64,000 nucleotides of DNA from positions 1,217,580 to 1,281,579 of the forward strand of contig JALDTO010000266.1 in the NCBI GenBank assembly GCA_023515725.1, given 5' to 3'. Numbering within the stretch: position 1 is the stretch's first letter; every line of letters starts with the position of its first letter. This DNA comes from Amoeboaphelidium protococcarum X5 (taxonomy: Eukaryota > Fungi > Aphelidiomycota). Both the position numbers and the translations under genes were made by a program. This document shows, in pieces, positions 1 to 59,617 of the stretch. The notes below the pieces were generated by a model that did not search any database, was not told where the DNA came from, and was given only the letters and a program-made list of their open reading frames with translations.

Positions 1-444
1 CATGCTCTGTCAGAGCTGCCTGACATGGATCAGGATTAGTTGATGCGTGCAGTGTAGGTAAAGCCAGGAAATTTGGTGACCTGTGAGCAGTTGGAGTCGC
101 CGTTATACTGCTTGGCGTTAAAGATGTGTATGGATGCAGTTTTCCCCCAGCAGTCATACGCCGGTGATATTCTGTAAAACTTGAAACGTGCCCATACGAG
201 CTCTTTCCGTCTGGACAGTCTGAAGCAGCAGATTGTCCAGATTGAGTCAACATCTTTGCCTACTTAAGACATGTCCAAGTGTGCGAAATGCGGTGAGATC
301 AAAGTTGCAGAATGCATGACGTGCAACTGTTCATTTTGCAATGTCCATTCAGCTGATCACGCCGCACACGCAACCACTCTAGAAGAGTCTGATCCTGGCT
401 CCGACTCGATGTCAAGTGGCGATACGCATGACTCAAATATTTGA
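1..444 (+). CDS. 3' part of a gene with a C-terminal B-box-like zinc finger (5' partial)
   Basis: Frame 1 is open to TGA 442-444 if TAR=Gln; it contains KCAKCGEIKVAECMTCNCSFCNVHSADHAAH (CxxC-x7-CxxC-x4-CxxH-x3-HxxH). Confidence 0.6.
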
Positions 445-4342: not shown

Positions 4343-11401
<7,059 letters not shown>

Positions 11402-11885
11402 ACGGTGCTAAGATGTCATACTGTTGAAGATTGGGAGGTATTGATGTCGTTATTGAAGAAGGAGATAAAATTTGGCGACAAGGAATGAGGAACGTACAGT
11501 ATAAAGATAGGTGCGAAGAAGAATGAAGTCGCGAGGGCGGCTCTCACTTGAAAGCAAACACGGAGACTAAAAAAGGTTACGATAAAGATGTGGACAAGAC
11601 TTTCGTGAAAGTAATGATAATCATTCATTTTCAGTCGATTAAAACAAGTCATCATAAGAGCGCTGCACCTATTCCATGTGTTTGAGGTTGGCTTAGTGGT
11701 CATTGATTTCACCTAAGCCCAACAGTAAACACCCACCACTCCCAAGGCAATTTGATTCCAACCTTGCAATCCCGTAAAAAATTTGTCACATTACCACTTG
11801 CAATCGCTATTCCCAGAGCGATTATATACGCGACGCAAGCAGCGCTCAATATTAATTTAATAACAGTCATCTATCCAAGAATTCA

Positions 11886-27780: not shown

Positions 27781-28612
27781 CATCAGAACCAGTTGTTACA
27801 CACGCGAATCACAAAGTGACGTGGTCAACAGGCATCAAAAACATTGCAGACACACTTATAATACAAAGACTTTTATTGGACGTATTCATAAATGACTGTA
27901 ATCCTTAAGAATAAAATAAGCCATTTATAGTCTATCAGCACGATAATGATAATAAGGCGTGGATGGAGAGGGGGGAAAGTGAAAGTGGAAGGTTGTCAAA
28001 ATTGAGTAAATCTCAAGTGACAAAGAGATCGCGTCATTTGCTAAAGCTATCTATTATCATAACGTTAATGAATTCTAAGATTGAAAAATTTAATATAGTA
28101 TTTGATTTTCTTAGTAAAGAATGCAGTGCTGTTAAGCTTGGTATTTAATCACAATGAGAAAGAGAAGATTGATAATCAAGATCTGTGTCACTATCAGTGA
28201 TCAGCCTATCATAAGAGGCTTCTCTAACTACATTGTTACACGACTAATCAGATTGCGTAGAATAACACAACTCAAATTCCAACAATTTATGATCAGGAAC
28301 CTTTGCAAAATGGATCTCATCGCTATAGCTGCGTGTATTAACACTGCGCATATTCTTTCCGCGTCTCGTTTGCGAGCGATATCGGCGCGCGTGTCAGAGG
28401 CAGTCTGTTAGAAGAAAAAACTCGAAAAAAATTTATTTCCGTCGGAACTTTTGAAGATTCATTCACCAACGGCGTGTCTTCTTTCCCATTCTCTCATTTA
28501 CTCTTCTTGCTCACATATTGTAATAATAACTTTTTACCAATAATTTTAATTAATTTGACTCTCATTTGAGTTGCTTTGGACTAGATTTCTGGATAGAGTA
28601 CACTTCTTTGTG

Positions 28613-35338
<6,726 letters not shown>

Positions 35339-57469: not shown

Positions 57470-59617
57470 ATGCCTCATAGTACTATACCGTGTTGTCCAA
57501 TCACTCAGATGCCAATGAAGGATCCTGTAATTGATCCTGATGGGAATTCGTATGAGAAAACGGCTATTCTGGAGTGGCTGTAGATTCATGGAGAATCTCC
57601 AATTACTAGACGTCCACTAAGTGCAGCTTAGCTGTTGCCTAATAGAGCTCTGAAGGATTTGATTGAAGGTGGTGGTGACTTGTCGCATGTTGACTCTGCA
57701 GCCACATAAGCTGATAACTTGGCGCCCGCTCTGGATGATCAGTTGGTGAAAGTTGTGAAATGGACTCACAACAACCATTTGGGCGTTACTATCAGTGGCC
57801 CTGACTCAAAGAAGCCTCATCCGATTCATGTCTGTTGCGTCGTTGATATCTCTGGCTCTATGGGAACTGAGGCTACGATTTCCAATCAAGAATCTGATGG
57901 TCTGACTTTATTGGATCTGGTCAAGCACGCTTGCCTGACTATAATTGAGTCTTTGAATGCGTATGACAAGTTATCTCTGATATCCTTCTCTAATGACGCC
58001 ATCGTTGAGCTGGATCCAACGTTGATGACCAAGGGTGGCAAGATTTTGGCCAAGAATGCTCTTCAATAGCTAAAGCCGACTGATTCCACCTATATGAGCA
58101 AAGGTATCAAGTTGGGTATTGAGACTGCAGCCAAGGTGTCTCACGAGCATTTCTCTTCTATTTTCATCTTGACGGATGGAGTTCCAACTGACAATTTGGA
58201 CTATCGTCAGTTGATCAAACGTTAACTTGACCAGAATCCTGTCTACGGATCCATGAGCACGTTTGGCTTCGGGTATTCCTTGGACACTAAGTGTTTGAAG
58301 GGAATCGCTTTGGAAGGCTTTGGGTCTTATAGTTTCATTCCTGATGCTTCAATGGTGGGCACTATATTTGTGAATGCTCTGAGTAATGCTCGTTGCGTAT
58401 ATGGTGTAAATCCGCAGTTGACTATTAACAATTCTAGAATAAAAGTTGTGGGAGATTTTAAGACCAACACCGGGCAGGATTCATAGACGGTGACGGTTTA
58501 GCCTCTTCGCTACGGACAAGATACTACCCTGGTCTTTGACTATAAGCATTCTGGTAATTAGCCCGTTGATATCACTTTAAACTTTGATGGGATCAATGGT
58601 AAGCACATGATAGTATCAGCAGTGCAAGCGGCTGCTGATGATGCTACATTGAATGATATTTTTAAAGTTTTCCAAATCTACCGTGCTGCTCTGGCGGTTG
58701 AATTGTTTGCTGTCTGTGTACAGAAGCAAGAAATCAAAGTTCCTACAGACGTTGAAAGTCGTAGAACTGAATACGAGCTCATTGACAATATATGCAAGGA
58801 CGTTGAGGGTCAGGTATCTCAAGCCTTGTCTAATGATCATTGGTATTCCAAATGGGGTGTCCATTATTTGGTATCTCTCGGTTTTGCTCATATGCTTCAA
58901 TTCTGTAATAACTTTAAGGATCCTGGTGTTCAAGGCTATGGAGGGGTGTTATTCAAGGAGTCTGTAGAGAAGCTGACTGACCTCTTTGTCTCTTTACCTG
59001 CTCCAAAGCCTTCGATTCAACGTCATGCATCATATGGTCGTGGAGGCGCTGCAAGTTCTGCTGCACCTGTTAATATGTCTCGCTACTATAACTCTGGTGG
59101 AGTATGCTTCCATCCTGACAGTCCGGTGGCAATGGCTGATGGGTCTCAGTGTCCCATTAAACATATTCAAAAAGGCGATGAAGTTATAAGTGACAGCGGT
59201 ATTGCTAAAGTTCAATGTCTGGTATAAACAGCGCATCAACAAGAATTTTAGGCATTTGTGCGCATGGGATCTAACGGAAACTTATTGATTACGCCGTATC
59301 ATCCAGTCGCTGTTGATGGCGATGAGTATAAGTTTCCTATTGAATGCAGCTCCGATATTGTCTTAAGTACTGTGCCTTCAGTTTACAATATTGTATTGAC
59401 TGATGGTAATACAATCAGTATTGATGGTGTTTAATGCGTAACTTTGGGACACTCTATTGACAGTGGAGCTGCAAAGCATATGTACTTTGGCTCTCGTCGC
59501 GTCGTTGAAGATTTGAAATAGTTGGCTGGGTACGATCAAGGCTTCGTGTCTATGACTAGTGATTAGATTTATCGGGGTAAAGACGGTACAGTCTGTGCAA
59601 TAAAGCCGTAATTATGA
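57470..59617 (+). CDS. U-box + VWA + Vwaint + Vint (Hint) domain protein (715 aa)
   Basis: U-box [26 protein letters not shown]...[15 protein letters not shown]; [21 protein letters not shown]; Vwaint [25 protein letters not shown]; Hint [42 protein letters not shown]. Confidence 0.9.

Follow-up and report, generated by a model that had tools for sequence, protein, structure and literature searches.

A probable self-cleaving precursor of a U-box ubiquitin ligase of the VWA-Vwaint-Vint family in the aphelid Amoeboaphelidium protococcarum

Described Vint proteins and the aphelid member

Among eukaryotic Hint domains, those of the Vint type form a third branch, next to Hedgehog and the inteins. 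The VWA-Vwaint-Vint family was defined by Bürglin (2008, BMC Genomics 9:127; PMC2362128), who named both the Vint and the Vwaint domains, described four members with an upstream U-box, reported conservation confined to motifs A and B and the absence of a signal peptide, and proposed that processing takes place intracellularly. Our literature search retrieved no cleavage experiment on any Vint protein and nothing on Vint biochemistry beyond that study; as far as we found in the literature searched, Vint is the only one of the three branches with an unpublished reaction product. The Vint domain of a protein of the ciliate Tetrahymena thermophila has been crystallised and its structure was released on 2024-02-28 (PDB 8R2C); the same search found no publication on it.

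Among the other Hint systems, Hedgehog is secreted and carries a sterol-recognition region, placed after the Hint core, that adds cholesterol, whereas inteins end in His-Asn followed by the nucleophile of the C-extein. BIL2, from the polyubiquitin-like BUBL1 locus of Tetrahymena (6Y75/6TMM), is likewise a Hint domain that is eukaryotic, cytosolic and linked to the ubiquitin system. It is located between two ubiquitin-like domains, has a C-terminal Asn, and joins its N-extein to lysines, being activated by histidine-bound zinc (PMC8616854). With respect to the ligase portion, the plant RING-VWA(-Vwaint) E3s WAV3 and SOR1 share the general design of the protein described here, with an E2-recruiting finger, a VWA domain and a Vwaint domain, but they have a RING instead of a U-box and lack a Vint domain, and hence self-cleavage. 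E3 activity has been measured for SOR1 (PMC5924906), and RING proteins with VWA and Vwaint domains have been described from wheat (PMC8169666).

The gene analysed here is contained in a stretch of 64,000 nucleotides (hereafter, the window) of contig JALDTO010000266.1 from A. protococcarum, a parasite of algae (Table 1). Its product is in our opinion, and with a probability of about 0.7, the cytosolic precursor of a self-cleaving U-box ubiquitin ligase of the VWA-Vwaint-Vint family. This reading is based on the recovery, above the respective Pfam cut-offs, of all four domains in the order U-box, VWA, Vwaint and Vint, as advanced by the original prediction, which was made from the DNA letters alone. 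The U-box members of Bürglin have the same domain order, motifs A and B, no signal peptide and a Vint-specific C-terminus. Nothing essential differs between them and the aphelid protein, whose gene uses a code with TAR as Gln and is present in two copies in the genome.

The gene was also initially considered the strongest candidate in the window for an uncharacterised system, and this claim stands in part. It holds for the biochemistry of the Vint domain, for the reasons given above, but not for the architecture or the intracellular processing, both already put forward in 2008, nor for the fold, solved in 8R2C. The gene is an ordinary representative of a family already described, for which there are Pfam models and a structure of the Vint domain, and its architecture is not new. 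Its value is that of a clean example, free of introns, duplicated and under selection, and it is a reasonable experimental entry point to a biochemically uncharacterised family rather than a discovery.

That family is large. When 1.84 billion representative proteins were scanned with HMMER without a profile, residues 365-585 being the query, we retrieved 2,126 clusters with E <= 0.001, 1,518 of them with E <= 1e-10; named relatives include proteins from Amoeboaphelidium occidentale and Mastigamoeba balamuthi. The VWA, Vwaint and Vint domains were all present in each of the 66 closest full-length relatives, and 33 of these also contained a U-box. Since the U-box is fused to the Vint domain in half of the closest members, the chemistry of the latter very likely controls a ubiquitin ligase.

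Table 1. Coordinates in the window of the gene and of the features of its deduced product
Feature	Position	Strand	Remarks
Complete, intron-free CDS	57470..59617	+	715 codons plus TGA stop; 14 in-frame TAA/TAG read as Gln
U-box (aa 8-66)	57491..57667	+	PF04564; 51 bits in the read-through search; first stop-free piece alone, 29.6 bits
VWA (aa ~121-290)	57830..58339	+	MIDAS: DISGS 126-130, T207, TDG 235-237
Beta-sandwich after VWA (aa ~310-385)	58397..58624	+	From the AF2 model of aa 291-545
Helical bundle (aa ~396-508)	58655..58993	+	From AF2 secondary structure; contains the Vwaint match
Vwaint (aa 436-503)	58775-58978	+	PF14624; 86 bits, cut-off 23.5
Ala/Ser/Gly-rich linker (aa 509-545)	58994..59104	+	pLDDT 50-77; ends at the predicted scissile bond Val545/Cys546
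Canonical Hint fold (aa 546-660)	59105..59449	+	Cys546 at 59105-59107; TPYH (Thr608-His611) at 59291-59302
Vint-specific folded extension (aa 661-715)	59450..59614	+	Made up of a helix and three strands, with pLDDT 91-98
Extension histidines	His661, 59450-59452; His670, 59477-59479	+	Invariant, 129/129

Gene integrity, genetic code and second copy

The gene is intact, intron-free and already public as a protein, although without a functional name, and its product has 715 amino acids and 77.8 kDa. Translation with the bacterial table yielded a frame of 716 codons with 14 interruptions, each of them a TAA or a TAG, whereas the sole TGA of the frame is its terminal codon. Under the standard or the bacterial code, these 14 in-frame stops would define a pseudogene, or an interrupted ORF that arose by chance. 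We count this possibility as refuted by several observations. The in-frame stops are exclusively TAA or TAG and the frame is closed by TGA, and other ORFs in the window exceeding 2,000 codons are likewise open only if TAR is read as sense (4343-11620 on the minus strand and 28559-35338 on the plus strand, of 2,425 and 2,259 codons, respectively, with TGA as the sole stop). Also, a UAR to Gln reassignment has been published for A. protococcarum (PMC5304391), and the translation with TAR as Gln coincides exactly with the deposited protein P0152, which belongs to a 90%-identity cluster whose named entries are all annotated as 'hypothetical protein' from this species. Lastly, homologues align uninterrupted across every TAR position of the gene, and its comparison with a second genomic copy (see below) gives a Ka/Ks of 0.11.

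The identity of the amino acid encoded by TAR deserves a separate comment. The 14 TAR codons correspond to variable alignment columns, in which Gln represents 5.6% of the residues, versus 3.6% overall and 22% in the columns of CAR codons. With such variable columns and so little Gln, this gene is not by itself a proof of the Gln assignment, which we take from the deposited protein and from the published reassignment. The reassigned stops of this gene are not concentrated at ancestral Gln sites. For instance, codon 252 (TAA, 58223-58225) aligns with Tyr in 40 out of 65 relatives, the TAY codons being one base away, and codon 344 aligns with Gly in 53 out of 65.

Searches of the whole genome (23.6 Mb in 346 contigs) retrieved exactly two matches each for Vint and Vwaint. 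The second copy is on the minus strand of contig C207 (955800-958900) and encodes a protein of 717 amino acids (P0151). Both copies are intact, and show 92.7% identity in protein and 90.5% in DNA, with a Ks of 0.35 and a Ka/Ks that rises from the overall value to 0.19 in the Vint domain; the gene is therefore under purifying selection. The duplication is probably genome-wide: there are seven U-box matches in the genome, and six of them pair up with near-equal scores in two different places, which suggests a genome-wide duplication, a hybrid origin or the presence of divergent haplotypes.

The U-box, VWA and Vwaint domains and the linker

Pfam domains were searched in the stop-free pieces of the frame, in the genome by reading through stops, and in the deposited proteins P0152 and P0001, the latter being a proxy with 92.9% identity. 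The U-box scored well above its cut-off of 21.4 bits, covering positions 6-65 of the 73 in the model; the match thus lacks model positions 1-5 and 66-73. VWA_2 reached 30.5 bits on a single stop-free piece that corresponds to the first half of the domain, and the VWA_2 (44 bits), VWA and VWA_3 models span residues 122-290 in P0001. The MIDAS motif had been described as intact, and its DISGS, T and TDG elements are indeed all present, on columns that are invariant or nearly invariant among the 66 relatives. The Vwaint domain was also recovered from a stop-free piece, with 83.8 bits.

The region from the end of the VWA domain to the Vint domain (residues 291-545) was modelled with AF2 with a pLDDT of 87.7, and consists of a beta-sandwich and a helical bundle followed by the linker. 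The sandwich and the helices resemble the post-VWA region of archaeal ArnB (8S05 and 5A8J; Z 9.7 and 8.9, over about 170 residues) and, more weakly, Sec23/24 (Z ~6). The ArnB scores are modest, yet above those of the single-domain matches ranked below them. Taken with the VWA domain that precedes them, the sandwich and the helices recall the VWA-sandwich-helical core of ArnB, and Vwaint may represent the helices of a core of the Sec23/24 type.

A self-cleavage site needs a flexible linker, and the Ala/Ser/Gly-rich segment ahead of Cys546, which includes the stretch RGGAASSAA, is where the original prediction had it, as are the TLGH and KHMYFG motifs downstream. The protein was also anticipated to lack a signal peptide. 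In agreement with this, only seven residues precede the U-box and the N-terminus is hydrophilic, with a mean Kyte-Doolittle value of -0.2 for the first 25 residues; judged by hydropathy only, there is no N-terminal hydrophobic segment and hence no signal peptide. Along the full length of the protein, hydropathy is highest in the window of residues 397-415.

Together, the first 545 residues (59.4 kDa), comprising the U-box, a metal-binding VWA, the beta-sandwich and the Vwaint bundle, would make up a ligase with its substrate-binding module. We infer the ligase role of this fragment from the U-box and, by analogy, from the activity of the plant RING-VWA(-Vwaint) E3s.

Fold, conservation and presumed reaction of the Vint domain

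The C-terminal 170 residues (18.4 kDa) form a Vint-type Hint domain. The Hint fold that had been proposed for this region was recovered both by profile and by structure prediction. The Pfam Vint model PF14623 matched window positions 59102-59578 with 120.2 bits (cut-off 27), covering positions 1-158 out of 166, and an AF2 model of residues 540-715, built with 66 sequences, reached a pLDDT of 94.6 and a pTM of 0.89. The best structural match of this model was 8R2C (Z 26.9, rmsd 1.3 Å over 164 residues, 38% identity; TM-score 0.85/0.89), in an alignment spanning model positions 5..174, equivalent to residues 544-713, and thus including the C-terminal extension. The same entry was found by sequence, in a phmmer search with the Vint region of P0001 (E 5e-28), and also contains the two additional histidines of the extension (LGH...H.Y.G). 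The chain of 8R2C starts with SGG-A-MHGD, with Ala at the position of Cys1, as in the 'C1A' entries of BIL2, which has the same fold. An Ala there would fit a construct made to prevent cleavage and, judging from it, Vint autoprocessing has evidently already been worked on by someone.

All the next-best structural matches were autoprocessing Hint domains with Z values of 10-12, including BIL2 (12.0), the DnaB, RecA and gp41-1 inteins (10-11) and the Drosophila Hedgehog HhC domain (1AT0, 10.8). The entire chains of inteins, HhC and BIL2 align only to model positions 7..~120, that is, residues 546-~660; for instance, the complete 145-residue chain of 1AT0 aligns to residues 546-659. Since these whole-chain alignments stop at around residue 660, the canonical Hint fold ends at '...GVQCVTLG', and the tail of about 55 residues that had been noticed does lie beyond it; among the structural matches, residues 661-715 align to 8R2C only. 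The coverage of the tail by both the Pfam Vint model and 8R2C led us to consider it as simply the remaining half of a Hint fold, an interpretation that was discarded because inteins, HhC and BIL2 end at around residue 659. The tail is nevertheless an integral, compactly folded part of the Vint domain, which has been crystallised with it, and not a loose appendage.

Conservation was evaluated with 129 near-complete Vint domains from among the top matches, and the 66-sequence alignment gave the same picture. Cys546, His611, Pro612, His661 and His670 show no substitution in any of the 129 sequences; Thr608 is conserved in 126 and replaced by Ser in the other three, and Gly691 and Arg702 are maintained in 128 and 123, respectively. 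The motifs for N-terminal cleavage, Cys1 and TxxH, which had been assigned to GGV/CF (codon 59105) and to TPYH (59291) and were found at these positions, are thus intact. Likewise, His661 and His670 are as constrained as the nucleophile, in spite of being outside of the classical fold. The invariant residues that are candidates for a catalytic role are hence four: Cys546 and His611 within the canonical Hint fold, and His661 and His670 external to it.

His661 immediately follows the last Hint strand, at the place where inteins have their terminal His-Asn. The lack of this pair had been predicted and was borne out: the sequence here is ...CVTLG-His661-Ser, and the residue after His661 is Gly in 83 of the 129 relatives, Asn in only 17 and Ser in 11, so that no His-Asn closing the Hint core is conserved among them. 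Additionally, the median distance from His661 to the end of these proteins is 60 residues, with no conserved C-extein. Without a conserved His-Asn and without a C-extein, intein-type splicing is excluded.

Self-cleavage is likely to take place at Val545/Cys546, as deduced from the presence of Cys1 in a Hint fold, the TxxH motif and the flexible Gly-rich linker upstream. Cys546, aided by Thr608 and His611, would attack the carbonyl of Val545 in an N-to-S acyl shift, generating a thioester. This would then be resolved without splicing, freeing the ligase module from the Vint domain. His661 and His670, whose proximity to Cys546 we infer from topology only, probably act in or regulate the resolution step, for instance by serving as general base or by forming a metal site. 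Water would be the simplest acceptor for the thioester, and we consider hydrolysis at least as likely as the formation of an adduct.

The same invariant residues could, however, have a role without any cleavage. One Cys and three His form a set able to bind zinc, and zinc binds to and modulates other Hint domains (PMC8616854); the Vint domain could then stay attached to the ligase as a regulatory or binding module, e.g. with Cys546, His611, His661 and His670 as a metal or redox sensor gating its activity. We find this very improbable, because a Hint Cys1, a T-x-x-H motif and a flexible Gly-rich linker are the standard arrangement for self-cleavage, and because constructs of the same fold in the PDB carry Ala in place of Cys1.

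For the self-cleaving precursor, the role of the extension bears on what happens to the thioester. It might be a transfer module, passing the thioester-activated C-terminus of the ligase either to a small molecule, as in Hedgehog, or to a lysine in a protein, as in BIL2. If true, self-cleavage would yield a covalently tagged or anchored E3 ligase and not merely a free one; we nevertheless regard this possibility as rather doubtful.

In the first of these variants, the extension would bind a small nucleophile, such as a sterol or lipid, and direct it at the thioester, and the freed ligase would be covalently tagged at its C-terminus, for example for targeting to a membrane. Hedgehog HhC and Vint have in common the Hint fold, Cys1, TxxH and an extra segment after the Hint core, and the folded 55-residue extension occupies the same topological position, right after the Hint core, as the Hedgehog region that recognises the adduct. 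Moreover, the extension is constant across the family, with its median of 60 residues, and is conserved to the same degree as the catalytic core, both of its histidines being invariant. However, it has no detectable similarity to the adduct-recognition region, and, motifs A and B apart, there is no sequence likeness to Hog: the Pfam Hint model (PF01079) scored 18.2 bits on the stop-free piece, below its cut-off of 29.7, and had no match with E <= 0.001 in the read-through search of the whole genome. The extension is also a small alpha/beta unit that packs well and contains no hydrophobic stretch, and the protein has a U-box at its N-terminus and is predicted to be cytosolic, with no candidate ligand known. 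An adduct of the Hedgehog type is, consequently, unlikely.

The second variant, in which a lysine from another protein or from the ligase itself would attack the thioester, leaving the N-fragment linked by an isopeptide bond with no need for ATP, seems to us highly unlikely. It is suggested by BIL2 of the BUBL locus being the second-best structural match (Z 12.0 over 118 residues; Foldseek E 1.4e-5), and by the control of BIL2 activity by histidines outside of motif B, which hints at what His661 and His670 might do through zinc. Nevertheless, the N-fragment of the aphelid protein is a 59-kDa multi-domain ligase and not a ubiquitin-like tag, and the protein lacks the C-extein, the flanking ubiquitin-like domain and the C-terminal Asn of BIL2. 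The residues before Cys546 show no sign of a ubiquitin-like tail, although their richness in Gly is compatible with one; among the relatives, the consensus of the three positions before Cys1 is S/G, G and G/P/V.
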